The notes: a model not told the origin generated them from the letters alone. A stretch of DNA of 63,705 nucleotides, filler included, from Octopus bimaculoides (GCF_001194135.2; 7 parts of 7 records of this genome joined end to end with filler, not necessarily neighbours in it), one strand, 5' to 3'. Numbered from the whole stretch's first letter, positions 22,246 to 36,373 are shown. Made by a program: numbers and translations.

Positions 22246-24057
22246 TAGAAAAAGGAGGTCGCCAGAATTTTGGAAAACACTTTTTATGCATTCATTATTA
22301 TTAGCGCCTTCGTTCTTTTTCTCTATATAAAAGTGAAACGGCCAAAAGTAGTGTTTGCGTGTCTCATTTAGTGGTTATGCAGGGTTCAATGGCAGTAGGC
22401 GTGTTCGGATTGCGGCGAAAATTTACAAGGACACGTAAAATGAAGCGAGGAAACGACTGGACTAGGTTAGAAATCTCCATCTCAAAAGCTGTGGTTACTA
22501 GGGCAACAAAATCCATTTTCGATCGATTCTGCAAGCTGTGGAGGTCATGCTTTATGGGCAATTTTAATAAAAACACACTTGCATAATCTACAGTCTCTTC
22601 TGTTTAATAGTTCGTCAATTTTTTATGGAAATTGTTTAAAAGAAAATATTTTATGAAGTGAAAAAAAGTTACATTTCTAGTCGTTTTACAGTTTGACTTT
22701 TGGCTGCTTGCATCTTTGGTTTGTTCAGGATAAAAATTATACCACCCGGTAGGATTTAATAAGAAATGTTTTTTGGATTTTGATTCGTTCAAAAATTCCG
22801 CCGATAAGTACAAAAATAATAAAGTTCACGGTTATTTTTCATTTTATTTTCTCGATTTAGTGGCAGGTGACAATAGGCGTGAAATATTTTTAAAGACTTT
22901 TTTTTTTTTTTTTNNNNNNNNNNNNNNNNNNNNNNNNNNNNNNNNNNNNNNNNNNNNNNNNNNNNNNNNNNNNNNNNNNNNNNNNNNNNNNNNNNNNNNN
23001 NNNNNNNNNNNNNNNNNNNNNNNNNNNNNNNNNNNNNNNNNNNNNNNNNNNNNNNNNNNNNNNNNNNNNNNNNNNNNNNNNNNNNNNNNNNNNNNNNNNN
23101 NNNNNNNNNNNNNNNNNNNNNNNNNNNNNNNNNNNNNNNNNNNNNNNNNNNNNNNNNNNNNNNNNNNNNNNNNNNNNNNNNNNNNNNNNNNNNNNNNNNN
23201 NNNNNNNNNNNNNNNNNNNNNNNNNNNNNNNNNNNNNNNNNNNNNNNNNNNNNNNNNNNNNNNNNNNNNNNNNNNNNNNNNNNNNNNNNNNNNNNNNNNN
23301 NNNNNNNNNNNNNNNNNNNNNNNNNNNNNNNNNNNNNNNNNNNNNNNNNNNNNNNNNNNNNNNNNNNNNNNNNNNNNNNNNNNNNNNNNNNNNNNNNNNN
23401 NNNNNNNNNNNNNNNNNNNNNNNNNNNNNNNNNNNNNNNNNNNNNNNNNNNNNNNNNNNNNNNNNNNNNNNNNNNNNNNNNNNNNNNNNNNNNNNNNNNN
23501 NNNNNNNNNNNNNNNNNNNNNNNNNNNNNNNNNNNNNNNNNNNNNNNNNNNNNNNNNNNNNNNNNNNNNNNNNNNNNNNNNNNNNNNNNNNNNNNNNNNN
23601 NNNNNNNNNNNNNNNNNNNNNNNNNNNNNNNNNNNNNNNNNNNNNNNNNNNNNNNNNNNNNNNNNNNNNNNNNNNNNNNNNNNNNNNNNNNNNNNNNNNN
23701 NNNNNNNNNNNNNNNNNNNNNNNNNAAAACTCTAAAGACACCTTCTATATAATGCACTCGCTTTGATCAATTGTCTCACAACTTGAGTGCGAGTATCACC
23801 TCTCACACATAAGAGTGCCATCATCGTTCTTTCTCTCTCTCCACCAGACTTAAAGACCTCCTGTGTGGGGCAACCTTCAACACCATTTCAGCTCTCTCAT
23901 CCACCTTCAAAGTCGGCTGCCTTCGCTTTTCGTATCTGGCTATTATTGTTGCTATCTTCAGGCCGAAAGTCCACTATTTCATCCCTGCAGCAGCTCTACT
24001 TGACCAGTTGCTTCTATTGTTCAACTTTGACTGACCACTGTCACACAGAGAGAAACA

Positions 24058-24106
24058 ATGGCTACGTGTAGTGTACGTTTCCGCTTCCTGTTTGGCGTAT
24101 TATTCG
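24058..24106 (+). CDS. Exon 1 of M4 metalloprotease gene (start of signal peptide)
   Basis: ATG at 24058 (acaATGG) reads MATCSVRFRFLFGVLF plus 1 nt, then a consensus donor G|GTGAGT at 24107. The phase-1 junction matches the acceptor at 26570 and gives MATCSVRFRFLFGVLFAFLGRHIVMS-AKW, a basic-hydrophobic-polar signal peptide. Confidence 0.8.
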
Positions 24107-24439
24107 GTGAGTTTAACATATTTTTCTATGTATCTATCTGTAGGTCTGTATGCGTGTGTTTGTGTCTGTACATAAACTTGTGCGTGCGTTTGCTTGTATG
24201 TATGTATGTATGTATGTATGTATGTATGCATGCGTATATGTCGGTGTCTGTGCTTGTTCTCCCACCATCGCTCCACAACCAGTGTTAGTGTGTTTACGTT
24301 CCCGTAATCTAGCGGTTCAACAAAAGAAAGTGATAGAATAAGTACTAAGCTTAAGAAAATTCTTGGGGTCGATTTGTTCGACTAGAAACCCTCAATGCGG
24401 TGCTCCAGCGTGGCCGCAGTCAAATGACTGAAGCAAAGA

Positions 24440-24900
24440 AAGCTGGAAAGTAGGTTGTCTCCGATTTTAAAGTCTTTATTTATAAATGAAAAACTTATAT
24501 TTTTCGAAATATTTAATCCTTAACATAACGTCCATTACTTCGTAGAATCTAATTCCATCTCTCAACAAGTTCATGGACGCCACTTGAAATATAATGCAAA
24601 GTACGGTCCCAATTAGATTTCAATTTCTTCTTCTCTCGATGTCAGCCTGAAGCCATTGAAATTGATTCTGTAATTCCCTAAGCAAATGATAATCAGAAGC
24701 TGCAAGGCCAGAAGAAGGTGGAAAATGAAACAATTCCTCCCAATGGATCTCTTCTAAGAGATTCTTAGTCAGTTGTACAGTGCGTGGGCGAGCATTATCG
24801 TGAAGCAAACTTCCTCTCTGTTGACCAAGGACGGGTGATTTTTGTCCAAAGCTGCTTTCAAGCAACGAAGCGGATCGCAATAAAGATTGGTGCCAAGAGG
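24440..24900 (-). mobile_element. Mariner transposase 3' remnant in the M4 intron
   Basis: LLHDNARPRT..WEELFHFPPSSGLAASDYHLLRELQN. Confidence 0.8.
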
Positions 24901-25515
24901 GGTCAATTCACTGGTCTTTTCCAGAAGACTTTCGGGCCAGGGCCTATGGATAACTTCCAGAAATCAAGCTCTACAGACAAGGAAGTGCTGCCAGACGGAC
25001 CTGTCCGAGGTGTGCGCAGGGCGGTGAAACCGTCTTGCATGTACTCACCCAGTGTCCGTGCATTACTGACCTGTGGAGTTTTGTCGAACAGCTGTTGTCA
25101 CGTGCCAAGTCCATTGTGAGGCCCTCCCCCACGCCACCTATTGGTCAGGAGGTAAAGGCAGTTTTCCTTTGCCTGGTGTCTATAACGAAAGTGGTAGTGT
25201 AGTGGACGAGATTGAAAGGACTGAAGAAGTTGAAAGAACTTCAACCTTAGCCCTCATCAACTTTTTCAAGTTTCACTTCAAAAGGAATGCGAGGGTAGAG
25301 AGGGAAGTACTGTCCCTCAGTAAGTTTGTTGAAAGGTGGTTGAATGTTGCGGAAATGGCTCGTGTGAAATGGGCCTACTCAGAATCTTCGTCTGTAAGTC
25401 GGAGCAGTTGAAGGGAAGAAAGGTGTCTACCGAGCGCGCCATTGGTCGTCTGTGCGGTGTGTCTTGGTTGGAGAATTTTGTTGTTTGATTTTTTTGTTAA
25501 CTCCTTTGTTGTTTT
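24900..25515 (+). mobile_element. L1/Tx1-like LINE ORF2 3' end in the M4 intron
   Basis: TCPRCAQGGETVLHVLTQCPCITDLWSFVEQLL (CCHC knuckle, from 25002), followed by a T-rich 3' region. Confidence 0.7.
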
Positions 25516-25616
25516 TTTTATTGCTTACACGTTTTTTGCTTTAAACTCCACTTGTCCCTTGTTTGTATTGTCCCTAATTGTTCTTGTGTTCGGCCCTTGT
25601 GGCCAATAAAGAAAGG

Positions 25617-25648
<32 letters not shown>

Positions 25649-25688
25649 CGAGTGTGAGAACAGTGCATGCCAACAAAGTGACACTGGG

Positions 25689-25757
<69 letters not shown>

Positions 25758-25819
25758 ATTATTATTATTATTATCATTATTATTATTATTATTATTATTA
25801 TTGAAACAAAGCATAGGTT

Positions 25820-26090
25820 CGTATTCATGTGGGTAGCGGGTTATTGTCTGTAATCTTAAGTATCAACACGTTTTCGGTAGTCTTTCTAGTTTTTAGAACC
25901 CTCCTCATAATTCTTACTGTCCTTAAGAAGCAAACTGTCTGTAGAAGCTCTACCGGCCATTCTATTTTAATACCCTTCAGCCATTTGTCCATATCTTCGC
26001 TCACTGTTCCCGACGCACCAATCATTATAGGCTCGATCTTTACTGTTCGCAAGCTCCAAAATTTTCCTAATTCAAATTTTAACGGATTGT
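25820..26090 (-). mobile_element. R4/Dong-like 3' fragment in the M4 intron
   Basis: LWSLRTVKIEPIMIGASGTV..ELLQTVCFLRTVRIMRRVL, next to a (TAA)n tract at 25690-25802. Confidence 0.7.
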
Positions 26091-26200
26091 ATATTCTTTC
26101 TTTCTTTCCTTCTTTCTTTCTTTCCTTCTTTCTTTCTTTCTTTGTTTCTTTCTTATTATTAATATTTATAGGATTGATGTTACTCCCCCAGAAAGTAAAA

Positions 26201-26432
26201 AAACAATAAAAAAAGAGTGCAACTGTTATCAAAAGAACGATATTTCGACATCTCGTGTATCTTCCACAGGTTCAAAAATAAATTTGTCGATCTATTTCAT
26301 TTTGTAACATCAATTCTATAAATATTAAACAAAATGAAGTAGATTGACAAGTTTATTTTTGAACCTGTGGAAGATACACGAGATGTCGAAATATCGTTCT
26401 TTTGATAACAGTGCCACTCTTCTTTATTGTTT
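26201..26432. repeat. ~100-bp inverted repeat (23-nt spacer) in the M4 intron
   Basis: 26204-26305 and 26329-26429 are near-perfect reverse complements with a few mismatches. Confidence 0.88.
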
Positions 26433-26439
26433 CTATCAC

Positions 26440-26453
26440 CATTATTATTATTA

Positions 26454-26520
<67 letters not shown>

Positions 26521-26553
26521 CATTATTATTATTATTATCATTATTATTATTAT
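26440..26553. repeat. (ATT)n microsatellite just upstream of the M4 exon-2 acceptor
   Basis: This is the source of the spurious poly-Ile N-terminus in ORF 26402..28420. Confidence 0.95.
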
Positions 26554-26570
26554 TCTCTTCTCCCGTCTAG

Positions 26571-28420
26571 CTTTCCTGGGGAGACACATCGTGATGTCAG
26601 CGAAATGGCGGCAGGCCAGGGACGTGTTCCTGTCAAATGTTGATACACTTAGTGAGACGATGAAGCGACAGCCTAGTCACATGATCACCACACGTGACCT
26701 ATTCGGTCTAACGAAGGGCGAGGACGTCGCACTAATGGACTCGGCACTGAGTGAACAAGGAACCGATATCAAAAAGTACCGCGAGACTTACAGAGGAGTT
26801 CCAGTATTTGATGCCAGCCTCACTTTAGAAGAGGACGCCAAAACGCATGTGTACACTGGTCAGGTGACTGGTAAACTAGTTGAGAACCTTGACGATGACA
26901 TCAACTCTACGATACCAAATTTGACCGACGAGGAAGCGATGCAATTAGCTGCCAACTACGGCAACTTCTCTATGGAAGGGGCCCGCATAGAGTATGATAA
27001 ACCCCAGTTGATGATCTTTGTGAAGGATGATATAGGAATCCTAGTCTATCGAGTTCAATATTATGCCGTGTCTGATGGAAAAAATTATCGATTTTGTATG
27101 ATGATTGATGCAAAGAACGGAACACTTGTCTCCAAATGGAATACATTAGAAACTGTAACGAGCAAATATGAAATGAAAGGTGTTGGTGGTAACATGTTGA
27201 TAGGCAAACAGAGATACGGAGAAGAACTACCATATTTGAAGGTGACACGTGAAGGCGATGAGTGTTATTTCGCGAACGATATCGTCAAAGTGGTGAATTT
27301 GAAAGGAGAAGAGTTTCTGCCTAATGAGGAAGAACAAGTCTATCACGTCAACTGCAAAGATGGTACGAAAGATGAAGCGAACGGAGCTTATTCTCCGATA
27401 AATGATGCTCTTTTCTATGGCAACATCATCTACAGTATGTACATGGAATGGCTGAAAGTTCCTCCGAAAAAGGAGTTGCCTATGGTCTTCCGTGTGCACT
27501 ATAGTAACGATGTAGTGAATGCTTTTTACAATGGCAGAAACTTTACGTTTGGTGATGGAGACTGGGATTACATGCCACTTGTGACCCTCGATATTGCAGC
27601 CCACGAAGTATCCCATTGCTTTACAGAGGAACACTCAGGTTTAATATACGAGGGACAGTCGGGTGGTATCGACGAATCGTTCAGTGACCTGGCTGGTGAA
27701 GCAGTTGAAATCTTTTTTAATATAAACGAAAATAACAACTGGAAAATTGGAGAAGACATTGCAGCAACACCAATTCGCAATATATGTAACCAATCAGAAG
27801 ACGGGATGTCGATCATACATGCCGGCGACTATAAAAGCAGTTTGGACGTCCATTACCTAAGCGGAGTATTCAACCGGTTCTACTGTTTGTTGTCCAATCG
27901 GAAAGAATGGGGTGTTCAAAAGGTGTTCCAAACAGCAGCACATTCCAACCGTTTCTACTGGCACCCAACAACCAGCTTCGTTGAGGCCGCTTGTGACTTT
28001 ATGAAATCCGCGTATGACCTTGGCTACGACACTGGACCTGTGTCACAAGTTTTCACGAAGGTAGGCATCGAAGTATGTGGTTTATCCTCATACATCAGAA
28101 CAGTCCATCAGAACTCAAAAATCGAGGGTCTAAGTGCGATTACCGGTCAAGAAGTCTTATTTCAACTAATCTTAACAAATTTACCATTAAAAAATGTGAA
28201 AATTGTTACATTTGGCAGTGGTGAAGCAGATTTGTTTGTTTGCTCCGAGAAGATTCTCTGTAATGAACATTTGTCGGAATGGCGATCGAACAAGCCTGGT
28301 TCCGACCAGCAGCTTTTCATTAAAAGTCCGAAGCAAGGCAAATATTTCATAATATTAAAACCAAAAGTCTCGAGCTATATCGAAGGTGTAACTTTAGCAG
28401 TGACATTTGAAGATAATTAA
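26571..28420 (+). CDS. Exon 2 of secreted M4-family (vibriolysin/pseudolysin-like) zinc metalloprotease: FTP + PepSY propeptide, M4 catalytic domain, C-terminal PPC-like domain
   Basis: Acceptor ttctcttctcccgtctAG at 26569-26570 and an uninterrupted frame to TAA 28418-28420. Motifs: YRETYRGVPVFD (FTP), LVYRV..IDAKNGTLVSKW (PepSY), NAFYNG..FTFGDG, HEVSH (27602-27616), GGIDESFSD (E at 27674), DVHYLSGVFN (H at 27851), and SGEADLFV..GKYFIILKP (PPC-like). Confidence 0.95.
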
Positions 28421-28422
28421 CA

Positions 28423-28466
28423 AATAAATTTGTTTTGTTTTAAAGCAAAAAAAAAAAAAAAAAAAA
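28423..28466 (+). terminator. Polyadenylation signal and genomic A-tract after the M4 gene
   Basis: AATAAA at 28423-28428, just after the stop codon, followed 18 nt later by 20 A (28447-28466) that run into an N gap. Confidence 0.6.
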
Positions 28467-29439
28467 NNNNNNNNNNNNNNNNNNNNNNNNNNNNNNNNNN
28501 NNNNNNNNNNNNNNNNNNNNNNNNNNNNNNNNNNNNNNNNNNNNNNNNNNNNNNNNNNNNNNNNNNNNNNNNNNNNNNNNNNNNNNNNNNNNNNNNNNNN
28601 NNNNNNNNNNNNNNNNNNNNNNNNNNNNNNNNNNNNNNNNNNNNNNNNNNNNNNNNNNNNNNNNNNNNNNNNNNNNNNNNNNNNNNNNNNNNNNNNNNNN
28701 NNNNNNNNNNNNNNNNNNNNNNNNNNNNNNNNNNNNNNNNNNNNNNNNNNNNNNNNNNNNNNNNNNNNNNNNNNNNNNNNNNNNNNNNNNNNNNNAGAGA
28801 GAGAGAGAGAGAGAGTGAGTGAGAGAGAGAGAGAGGGAGAGAGAGAGAGAGAGAGAGAGAGAATTTAGTAATTACATATATAACAGGTATGTATATGATA
28901 CAAAAGCATATTGAAATACGAATCCAAAACCGAAGAAAATAACAAAGAAAGAAAGAAATATTGAAACAAAGGAAAGAAAGAAAGAAAGAAAAACATCAAA
29001 GCAACAGCGTTTCAATTGGTCGCAAACCACAAGGTTCAACGGAACCTGCTAAAGTAAGCCAACGCATGCGTAGCATTACCGCCTGTGATGACGAGGCTAA
29101 GGCTTTGGAAGAGCCAAGTACACTCACGGAATTAAGCAATAGCAGCAACCCTACAGTAAAATCTTTCTCTACTCATGCTTATAGAATGTGCAAGGTTGAA
29201 AATCTAGAAACTACAGACAAAAAAGCAGCAAACCCTTTATATTAATATTGTGTTAAAAATAGACCAAAACAAATATATTCTTCAAAGCTATGAGAAATGA
29301 GATGGAGAGCAACAGACGCGTGTTTCATTGTAAGTCAATGTGACATACTACTATCACTTTCGAAAGGAAGTCGAAAAAGATTTTACTCTAGAGCTGTCGA
29401 TGCATGACGGGAAACTGAGAGAATCCCGTTGTCTCATCA

Positions 29440-29925
29440 TCATAATTCCATCATCATCGTTTAACATCCAGAGAAGGAAAAGTATTGGCCCCAGCATCGA
29501 CCCCTGGGGAACGTCACTGCAGGCATTCGTCTGCGCGGAGAAATCTCCATTTATCTGCACTGGAAAGGTTCGATGGCTCAGGAAGGAAGAAATCCACGAA
29601 GTCACCAATGGGTGAATCTTGTATGCTTGAAGTTTGCGCAAGAGAAGTCGGTGATTAACGGAGTCAAACGCCTTTGCGAAGTCCACCGAGTCTTTTTCAT
29701 CCATGGTACTTGTAATCCACTCTTCAAGAAGGAGAAGATTTGTCAGGCAAGATCTTCGGCGTTGAAATCCATGCTGCGAGTCGGATATAGCATTTGAAAT
29801 AAGGAGGTGATCCATGAGAGATTACTTGACGATGATCTCCATGACTTTGCAGAGGATGGATCTCAGACTGACCGGTCGATAATTAAGGGGATCTTCCTTA
29901 CTGCCCTTTTTGAATATTGGATTAA
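29440..29925 (-). mobile_element. CR1/L2-type LINE reverse transcriptase fragment
   Basis: PIFKKGSKEDPLNYRPVSL..QHGF..RSCLTNL..DFAKAFDSVNH..VPQGSMLGPILF. Confidence 0.88.
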
Positions 29926-35457: not shown

Positions 35458-36373
35458 CTATCGTATTTCTTGGGAAATCACTTTATAAACATGCCGCATA
35501 ATATCGATTGTTTGGAATTTGTCTTCCTCTATATCACATATTGCAACAATGGCCGGAGACTTGGAATACTTCTGAGGTTGGTAATGTTCCAAAACTTTGT
35601 AGAGCTTAAATTGTTTTTGATGAAAAAGTACTTTAAGACTTAGCTTCTCAGTCAGAATACCAATCCAGACATCAGTCGGCATAAAATGAGTATTCTTCAA
35701 AGCTGCCAGATAAAGTTTGTTGAATACTTTGATGTGTGCAACATAAGCAAAGCCGTGACAATACCGGGGATAGAACTGTCCTTGATATAATTTTCGGGGT
35801 TCTAACACACGAAACCGCTCTAGCTCAAGATGATGGGCTCGTGCCTGGCCAACAGGATAACAAAGTGCAAAGTGGTCTTCGCGAGCACCTTTGGAGAAAT
35901 CCGTGCCAAGCCACGATACAAGTCTGCCGTGATCTATCAAAGACTCATCATTCATCATCGCAACATATTCGGCATTGGCACAGAACTCTCCAATCCATTT
36001 CCACGCCATAATTGCTTTCATAGAAACATTCGTATATGATTCCTTGAAATCCTCCTGAAGGATATCATGATACATTTCGCTCTCTTTTTGAATGAGGGAT
36101 TCAATTGTAGAATTATCTGTCTTAGCGAAAAGAAAAACGTGTTTAATAATGACGCCTCTCGCACAAGAGTCACTTGGAATATTTTTAAAAGATTTTCTTA
36201 ATATTTCCCGCCGATCAAAATGATTGTACATAGTGATAATAGCATAAATAATAAATATTCTTCCATGTTGTGAACAGAGATTCGGTTCATTAATAACTCT
36301 TTGGAAATTATGTTCGTATGGTATTGGCTGATCATAATACATTTTGGGGATCACTGATCCTTTTGGCCGTTGT
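35458..36373 (-). CDS. GT31 / Galactosyl_T family beta-1,3-glycosyltransferase catalytic exon (5' exon(s) not located)
   Basis: 298-aa open frame with DRREILRKSF, ESEMYHDILQEDFKESYTNVSMK..WKW..FC, YPRYCHGFAYV and TDVWIGIL. Candidate acceptors at 36374-36375 (tctttctcAG) and 36450-36451 (ttcttctacAG; the gene frame has a stop at 36429-36427). AATAAA on the minus strand at 35437-35432. Confidence 0.85.

Follow-up and report, generated by a model that had tools for sequence, protein, structure and literature searches.

How a protease gene of the bacterial M4 (thermolysin) family came to stand as a spliced, secreted gene in the DNA of an octopus is the question raised by positions 24,058 to 28,466 of a stretch from Octopus bimaculoides (GCF_001194135.2). 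The stretch, called the window here, comprises 63,705 nucleotides, in which seven parts of the genome assembly are joined end to end with filler, and all positions are counted from its first letter. An earlier note, made from the sequence alone, had described a long uninterrupted M4 reading frame preceded by a separate 49-nt signal-peptide exon and had proposed a horizontal transfer from a gamma-proteobacterium. Our computational follow-up indicates that the locus is very probably ZnMP1, an intact and constrained two-exon nuclear gene derived from a bacterial pseudolysin/vibriolysin-type M4 preproenzyme gene that an early mollusc acquired in a single event, before the lineages of cephalopods and bivalves separated.

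The gene lies in a piece of AT-rich animal DNA (20966-43895, GC content 0.377) that is interrupted by six assembly gaps. A long open reading frame (ORF) at 26402-28420 is real, and its 5' portion is read-through of an (ATT)n microsatellite. The true start of exon 2 is 26571, right after an acceptor AG at 26569-26570. The parts of the gene are as follows:

23748-24057, plus strand, conserved 5' flank, putative promoter and 5' untranslated region (UTR), matching the orthologous O. vulgaris locus at 85% and the paralogue loci L014 and L016 at 69-72%
24058-24106, plus strand, exon 1, 49 nt, with ATG, 16 codons and 1 nt, which code for the signal peptide's n- and h-regions (MATCSVRFRFLFGVLF and the first base of Ala17)
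24107-26570, plus strand, phase-1 spliceosomal intron, 2464 nt, GT..AG, with a polypyrimidine tract
26571-28420, plus strand, exon 2, encoding the remaining signal peptide, the propeptide, the catalytic domains and the PPC-like domain, with a TAA stop
26600-27202, plus strand, propeptide, probably of the FTP/PepSY type (intramolecular chaperone-inhibitor), about residues 27-227, boundaries approximate
27203-27628, plus strand, Peptidase_M4 catalytic N-domain, residues 228-369, with HEVSH at 27602-27616 (checked by translation)
27635-28069, plus strand, Peptidase_M4_C helical domain, residues 372-516, with Glu385, Tyr376 and His444
28106-28417, plus strand, diverged PPC-like C-terminal domain, residues 529-632, a profile-level match
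28423-28428, plus strand, AATAAA polyadenylation signal, beginning after 2 nt past the TAA and kept in the O. vulgaris orthologue

Exon 1 starts with the ATG at 24058 and ends in ...TTATTCG/GTGAGT with the donor at 24107, and the acceptor reads ...ctcttctcccgtctAG at 26569-26570. Joining both exons in phase 1 gives 632 codons followed by TAA at 28418-28420, and the spliced product begins with MATCSVRFRFLFGVLFAFLGRHIVMSAKW. This protein is identical (100%, full length) to XP_014767445.1, "elastase [Octopus bimaculoides]", and to UniProt A0A0L8I2B8. The reading frame, the 49-nt exon, the phase-1 join, the N-terminus and the length of 632 amino acids given by the earlier note were all confirmed, as was its guess that an annotation might already exist. 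As the 5' flank is also similar at the paralogue loci, duplications therefore took the upstream region along with exon 1. The coding sequence has a GC content of 0.43 (0.46 at third codon positions), against 0.37-0.38 in the intron and a neighbouring host ORF; the intron, at 0.369, resembles the host flanks, and base composition is not informative about the origin of the gene. A run of A residues after the polyadenylation signal was considered as a mark of a retrogene and dismissed, as the O. vulgaris orthologue has merely an A-rich stretch there.

The gene had been published before. Liu et al. 2018 (Data in Brief 19:1274, PMC6011040) listed XP_014767445.1 as ZnMP1, one of seven Zn-metalloproteinases among 12 genes reported as bacteria-to-octopus transfers, with a companion paper in Gene (doi 10.1016/j.gene.2018.05.013). 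In the same study, ZnMP1 is reported to have been amplified from hepatopancreas cDNA as a 248-bp product. The forward primer matches exactly at 27318-27340, and the amplicon is 98.4% identical to 27318-27565 and 91% identical to the O. vulgaris orthologue; it lies wholly within exon 2 and is therefore no test of the splice. Both the gene model (RefSeq, UniProt) and the reading as a horizontal transfer (2018) are thus already known, and the word 'Ancient...' in the title of the Gene paper suggests that an ancient origin may in part have been stated as well. In comparison with the present analysis, PMC6011040 does not describe the signal-peptide exon and its intron, the members in cuttlefish and bivalves, or the intron they share. 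Literature searches on M4/thermolysin transfer in bivalves or cephalopods, on venom and digestive-gland proteomics and on the gene accessions found nothing past this publication.

The catalytic part of the protein was identified without difficulty in Pfam, with Peptidase_M4 at E 1.1e-20 (75 bits, cut-off 22.4) and Peptidase_M4_C at E 4.9e-25 (89 bits, cut-off 24.4). FTP (E 0.034) and PepSY (E 0.0027) stay under the cut-off in the octopus protein, and the relatives P0008 and P0011 pass it for FTP. The best relative of solved structure is Pseudomonas pro-elastase (8cr4), whose alignment (E 2e-81) runs over residues 39-517 of the octopus protein and takes in the propeptide as well as the catalytic domains. 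No Pfam match to PPC was obtained in the octopus protein itself; a profile of the mollusc C-termini compared with the bacterial PPC segment gave a hhalign probability of 98.1% and E 1e-13 over 101 columns, with GxGDxDLYV conserved. The predicted four-domain layout FTP-PepSY-M4-PPC, which had been claimed for this locus from the start, accordingly appears to hold, with M4 and M4_C established by Pfam, and three of its four parts (FTP, PepSY and PPC) are seen at profile level only.

The residues needed for catalysis are in place. Thermolysin H142, E143, H146 and E166 correspond to octopus H361, E362, H365 and E385, and Y157, D170, R203 and H231 to Y376, D389, R419 and H444; the thermolysin reference used for this mapping was checked against PDB. 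All eight residues are kept in all 26 sequences of the animal clade described below, and the HExxH motif (H361-E362-V-S-H365) in 26/26 animal and 206/206 bacterial sequences. The third zinc ligand, E385, stands within GGIDESFSD at the position of the GxxNEaxSD motif. Two cysteine pairs, 248/278 and 491/519, match the pseudolysin disulfides; a third, 422/455, is conserved too, and all three pairs are kept in 26/26 sequences of the animal clade.

Among known enzymes, pseudolysin (LasB, the elastase of P. aeruginosa, PDB 8cr4; MEROPS M4) has homologous propeptide and catalytic domains, the same zinc ligands and catalytic Glu/Tyr/His, and two disulfide pairs. It shares about one-third identity with the octopus protein and does not have the C-terminal PPC domain. 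The octopus enzyme is set apart by a eukaryotic signal peptide encoded on a separate exon, by one additional cysteine, in HEVSHC, and by six N-x-S/T sequons. The vibriolysin-type M4 proteases with PPC (Vibrio zhugei P0026; MCP-02, PDB 3nqx) share the four-part layout and are among the best bacterial matches (36%). These bacterial proteins show a strong Pfam PPC match (E 2e-20), whereas the octopus domain is visible only from profile to profile, and no bacterial group is closer.

Selective constraint is indicated by the comparisons made with the Nei-Gojobori method, with a ratio of nonsynonymous to synonymous substitution rates (dN/dS) of 0.34 against the O. vulgaris orthologue (dS 0.20), 0.16-0.20 against paralogues and 0.10-0.23 in other pairs with unsaturated dS; this check, listed by the earlier note, thus gave 0.10-0.34 overall. 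Judged from its sequence, the gene is intact, under selective constraint and functional. At the N-terminus, Arg7 and Arg9 precede a hydrophobic core (F10-G20), and positions -3 to -1 are V-M-S, in agreement with the -3/-1 rule; the segment fits a predicted cleavable signal peptide cut after Ser26. The gene thus carries, at sequence level, the eukaryotic features of a spliceosomal intron, a signal peptide and a polyadenylation signal, and the claim that a separate signal-peptide exon with a canonical phase-1 intron had been set on a bacterial-type M4 preproenzyme gene was borne out.

Conservation of the phase-1 intron in related genomes had been named as a further check, and all genomic copies that were inspected have the intron: O. 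bimaculoides ZnMP1 and ZnMP7, O. sinensis, O. vulgaris, Argonauta, another octopod, cuttlefish, two eukaryote loci from metagenome assemblies, Pecten, Saccostrea and Mytilus. In each of them a short exon 1 ends in one base of a split codon and is followed by an intron and by the remainder of the gene in one exon. Equivalent exons of 49-55 nt ending in G/GTGAGT were found in ZnMP7, in O. sinensis and Argonauta, and in O. vulgaris, whose exon is 93.6% identical. In all cephalopod copies and in the two metagenome-assembly loci, the distance from the acceptor AG to the codon of the conserved Trp29 is exactly 35 nt. Two proteins lend indirect support to splicing in relatives: the cuttlefish P0238, from a 2-kb Logan contig, has a signal-peptide-like N-terminus and leaves the genomic read-through exactly at the predicted junction, and in the mussel P0132 an exon-1-type N-terminus is joined directly to exon 2, from which it lies 1.4 kb apart in the M. 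edulis genome.

Several public gene models were seen to deviate from this structure. In O. vulgaris, the 579-aa model CAI9743214.1 takes an internal Met as its start and leaves out the signal-peptide exon; in OX597841.1 (L017) that exon lies at about 860-908, some 9 kb upstream of the part from 9891 onward, with its ATG and the G/GTGAGT donor kept. The ORF of ZnMP7 (L016) enters an assembly gap where the stop is expected, just past the ...VTFQEK codon, and the C-terminal extension of 80 residues in the 712-aa RefSeq model, encoded by a supposed third exon, is probably an artefact. Prokaryote-style calls on L003-L009 (cuttlefish-type Logan contigs), L011 and L013 render the polypyrimidine tract as a false hydrophobic N-terminus, e.g. 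MNEPHLLLFS..., which could be mistaken for the signal peptide of an intronless gene. The Logan contigs with P0006 and P0008 (2.1-2.5 kb) were considered as mRNAs and rejected; they are genomic, with microsatellite ends, a polypyrimidine tract with an AG acceptor and intron read-through N-termini.

To which organisms the gene is related was then read from the distribution of its relatives. Close relatives are found in O. vulgaris, O. sinensis, Argonauta hians and a second O. bimaculoides locus, ZnMP7 (XP_014783435.1). A 51%-identical protein clusters with "hap" of Acanthosepion (Sepia) pharaonis, and the gene is therefore present in cuttlefish as well. A profile search added Pecten, Argopecten, Mizuhopecten, Ylistrum, Saccostrea, Pinctada and Mytilus, so that the clade covers octopods, cuttlefish and four bivalve families (scallops, oysters, pearl oyster and mussel). 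The models of these molluscs, named 'elastase-like', 'virulence metalloprotease' or 'hap', share the clade (100% bootstrap), the layout and the phase-1 signal-peptide intron with the octopus gene, from which they differ in being 35-51% identical, in the acceptor spacing and, in scallop and mussel, in flanks of the cathepsin-L type. Four eukaryotic contigs also carry clade members; retrotransposon genes and a low gene density point to their eukaryotic source. The metagenome-assembly contigs ERZ25073293, ERZ25073280 (L011/L012) and ERZ25084522 (L013) carry M4 members that group with the bivalves in the tree, and on these contigs an MFS gene is the neighbour of the M4 member. No other animal phylum appeared among the named matches listed in either search (120 each).

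A neighbour-joining tree was calculated from 26 animal-clade sequences and 206 bacterial matches with thermolysin as root and 200 bootstraps. The animal sequences form one group in 200/200 bootstraps (100%); inside it, cephalopods stand against the metagenome-contig group with the bivalves, and sub-groups follow taxonomy. All members have in common the derived A-[KRQH]-W motif after the signal peptide, Cys422/Cys455 and the loss of Asn112. The best bacterial matches listed, from a search of 5.8 billion clusters, are 33-37% identical and none exceeds 37%. A single old acquisition is well supported by these sequence relations.

The same data bear on a recent transfer, restricted to the octopus lineage, from a marine gamma-proteobacterium such as Vibrio. 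Vibrio, Photobacterium and Xanthomonadales are indeed among the best bacterial matches and share the FTP-PepSY-M4-PPC layout, which would suit such a donor. However, identity to the bacterial proteins stays within the limit just given, the distances of the animal clade to all 206 bacterial sequences are alike (1.27-1.56 substitutions per site) and about twice the bacterium-to-bacterium mean of 0.66, and cuttlefish and bivalve genes join the octopus genes at 100% bootstrap with the signal-peptide intron in common. A recent event is thus highly unlikely, and a gamma-proteobacterial or Vibrio donor, as proposed in the earlier note, is not shown, with the clade near-equidistant from the sampled bacteria and sister to them on the thermolysin root. 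Of the proposed transfer, bacterial ancestry stood as the best explanation; that it is a peculiarity of the octopus did not.

Several points weigh against an ancient single uptake with its signal-peptide intron. The signal peptide was judged by rule. No O. bimaculoides RNA read or transcript across 24106/26571 was found, and the published amplicon lies inside exon 2. The acceptor stands 29 nt before the Trp position in mussel and oyster and 14 nt before it in Pecten, against 35 nt in cephalopods. The tree is by neighbour joining only, and the thermolysin root places the animal clade as sister to the sampled bacteria and not nested within them; the direction of transfer and the donor are therefore argued from distribution and parsimony. 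The rooted position may also be affected by long-branch attraction to the outgroup.

The acceptor of Pecten, mussel and oyster does not fall at the same aligned codon as that of cephalopods, which would fit at least two independent transfers, one into cephalopods and one into bivalves, from related donors. The differences in spacing are multiples of three and fall in a region tolerant of in-frame indels; we read the copies as one ancestral intron, whose identity across the classes is plausible, if not proven. Two or more transfers would have to be squared with the monophyly of all animal sequences at 100% bootstrap, with the shared A-[KRQH]-W motif, the Cys422/Cys455 pair and the Asn112 loss, with an intron of the same phase and location class in every copy, and with a metagenome-contig lineage that groups with the bivalves and yet has the 35-nt spacing of cephalopods; such a history is accordingly very improbable.

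The sister position on the thermolysin root, together with vertical inheritance of the clade within molluscs and the four further eukaryote contigs that carry a clade member, could also be explained without any horizontal transfer, by an ancient eukaryotic or metazoan M4 gene that descended vertically and was lost in nearly all other animals. The earlier note had named a vertically inherited, broadly distributed metazoan M4 clade as evidence against its reading, and the mollusc clade comes close to this, with the event dated before the split of cephalopods and bivalves. The horizontal reading is favoured in that only molluscs are among the named matches listed (120 per search), one exon still holds the complete bacterial preproenzyme down to its 'bacterial pre-peptidase C-terminal' domain, and the sole intron is located in the added signal peptide. 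Vertical descent would in addition require very many independent losses, and it seems quite unlikely when set against this architecture.

The remaining question about origin is whether the gene really belongs to the octopus chromosome. The gap-free stretch 23726-28466, flanked by runs of N at 22914-23725 and 28467-28795, contains both exons and the intron, as had been claimed for it, and the intron holds microsatellites. Host DNA was further recognised by these features in and around the gene:

24196-24436, no strand assigned, SINE-like interspersed host repeat in the intron, with 74-76% matches in both orientations in O. vulgaris, O. sinensis and O. bimaculoides loci
24482-24847, minus strand, decayed mariner-like transposase fragment in the intron, with a translation containing LLHDNARP...SDYHLL and a stop
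24960-25199, plus strand, 3' remnant of a non-LTR retrotransposon (zinc-binding reverse transcriptase tail) in the intron, zf-RVT E 1.6e-4, under the gathering score
26209-26425, no strand assigned, 97-nt inverted repeat in the intron, a MITE-like hairpin with arms at 26209-26305 and 26329-26425, 94% complementary, and a 23-nt loop
21329-21652, plus strand, mariner Transposase_1 fragment, E 6e-14, flanking the gene across an assembly gap
29354-29815, minus strand, reverse-transcriptase RVT_1 fragment, E 3e-13, flanking the gene across an assembly gap
35458-36354, minus strand, Galactosyl_T ORF, an intact single exon of 298 aa, E 8e-25

The intronic fragment at 24482-24847 is presumably mariner, assigned at motif level from the mariner signature, and Pfam gave no confirmation. 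The inverted repeat sits between two (ATT)n microsatellites. In the chromosome-level assembly, the gene lies on the 110.5-Mb scaffold CM046607.1 of GCA_001194135.2, where the Galactosyl_T gene is the next annotated gene downstream (7 kb, 294-aa model). The O. vulgaris locus is collinear, with the 5' flank and exon 1 85-94% identical, then parts of the intron (89%), and then exon 2. Repeats, scaffold and collinearity thus show that the gene is continuous with host DNA and keeps its chromosomal position in a related species, and the host SINE-like repeat, microsatellites and mariner DNA reported in the earlier note were recovered, the mariner DNA as the flanking Transposase_1 fragment and, at motif level, in the intron.

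An ORF from an octopus-associated bacterium that entered the assembly by contamination or by a chimeric join would account for the bacterial nature of all nearest non-mollusc relatives and for the uninterrupted reading frame. Against this stand the gap-free contig shared with octopus repeats, the chromosome-sized scaffold, the orthologues and paralogues of identical exon-intron structure that four other cephalopod genomes contain, the low identity to any bacterial protein, only 33-37% in the search described above, and the eukaryotic AATAAA past the stop. Contamination is hence barely conceivable, and the claim that the gene is fixed in animal chromosomal DNA was upheld.

The ancient transfer is therefore best pictured as a domestication, in which the bacterial ORF would have been kept whole as one exon and would have received a host promoter, a short 5' exon with a eukaryotic signal peptide, a phase-1 intron and a polyadenylation signal. 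Pseudolysin and vibriolysin are made as zymogens and matured stepwise, and the octopus enzyme may follow the same route. The signal peptide, cleaved after VMS26, would send the zymogen to the secretory pathway. The FTP/PepSY propeptide would serve as folding aid and inhibitor and would be removed autocatalytically near residue 215-220, as in the family. A zinc endopeptidase of about 300 residues would thereby be freed, with H361, H365 and E385 as ligands and E362, Y376 and H444 as catalytic residues. By the same analogy, substrate binding is a possible task of the C-terminal PPC-like domain, which may otherwise be cut off.

What the enzyme does in the animal can be approached from its site of expression and its neighbours. 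In the scallop (Pecten maximus L010, 1-2342 and 20780-24731), cathepsin-L-type genes (Inhibitor_I29 and Peptidase_C1) lie on both sides of the M4 gene, and the same cathepsin-L-type flanking is found in the mussel (Mytilus edulis L019, 1-3168 and 16892-19292). This microsynteny is conserved between scallop and mussel and hints at a cluster of digestive proteases in bivalves; the octopus gene has no such cathepsin-L neighbours. The most likely role, as a best guess from the hepatopancreas RT-PCR (PMC6011040) and the cathepsin-L-type neighbours in bivalves, would be digestion of extracellular protein in the digestive gland.

The same gene might instead act in venom or saliva, or in antimicrobial defence, as the earlier note had suggested. 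Octopus saliva is proteolytic (cited in PMC7656900), and O. bimaculoides has an expanded family of 7 copies, a frequent pattern in venom and immune genes. No support for such a use was found: the hepatopancreas cDNA is the sole expression evidence, the terms M4, elastase and thermolysin are absent from the text of one octopod venom-gland genomics paper, and the scallop and mussel genes lie between cathepsin-L-type genes. A role in venom or defence is thus possible but doubtful, and digestion is kept as the preferred role.

Taken together with the distribution of the clade, a fuller history seems rather probable, in which one entry into the mollusc lineage took place before the split of cephalopods and pteriomorph bivalves (Cambrian or earlier), the signal-peptide exon and the phase-1 intron were gained then and kept since, the bivalve gene came to lie in a cathepsin-L digestive-protease cluster, and the octopods expanded the family to 7 copies. 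If true, this single ancient entry would be one of the oldest and best-preserved transfers of a protease from bacterium to animal. The locus offers a clean textbook case of an animal domesticating a bacterial secreted enzyme, with the ORF in one exon and a tiny upstream exon that replaces the bacterial export signal. The finding itself adds little, since the gene and its horizontal origin were already annotated and published. The additions are modest: the transfer is old and shared across molluscs rather than peculiar to the octopus, no donor can be resolved, and several public gene models are defective. Only two points are possibly new, namely that the gene has a single origin for molluscs as a whole, with its signal-peptide intron conserved, and that in bivalves it lies among cathepsin-L genes.

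A minor observation concerns the 5' end of the gene. A 334-bp copy in L001 (1535-1868), about 8 kb upstream of the gene and outside the piece described above, is 98.8% identical to 23738-24071, from the 5' flank through the 5' UTR to the initial 14 nt of exon 1. Either the 5' end of the gene was duplicated locally, or the copy is an assembly duplicate.

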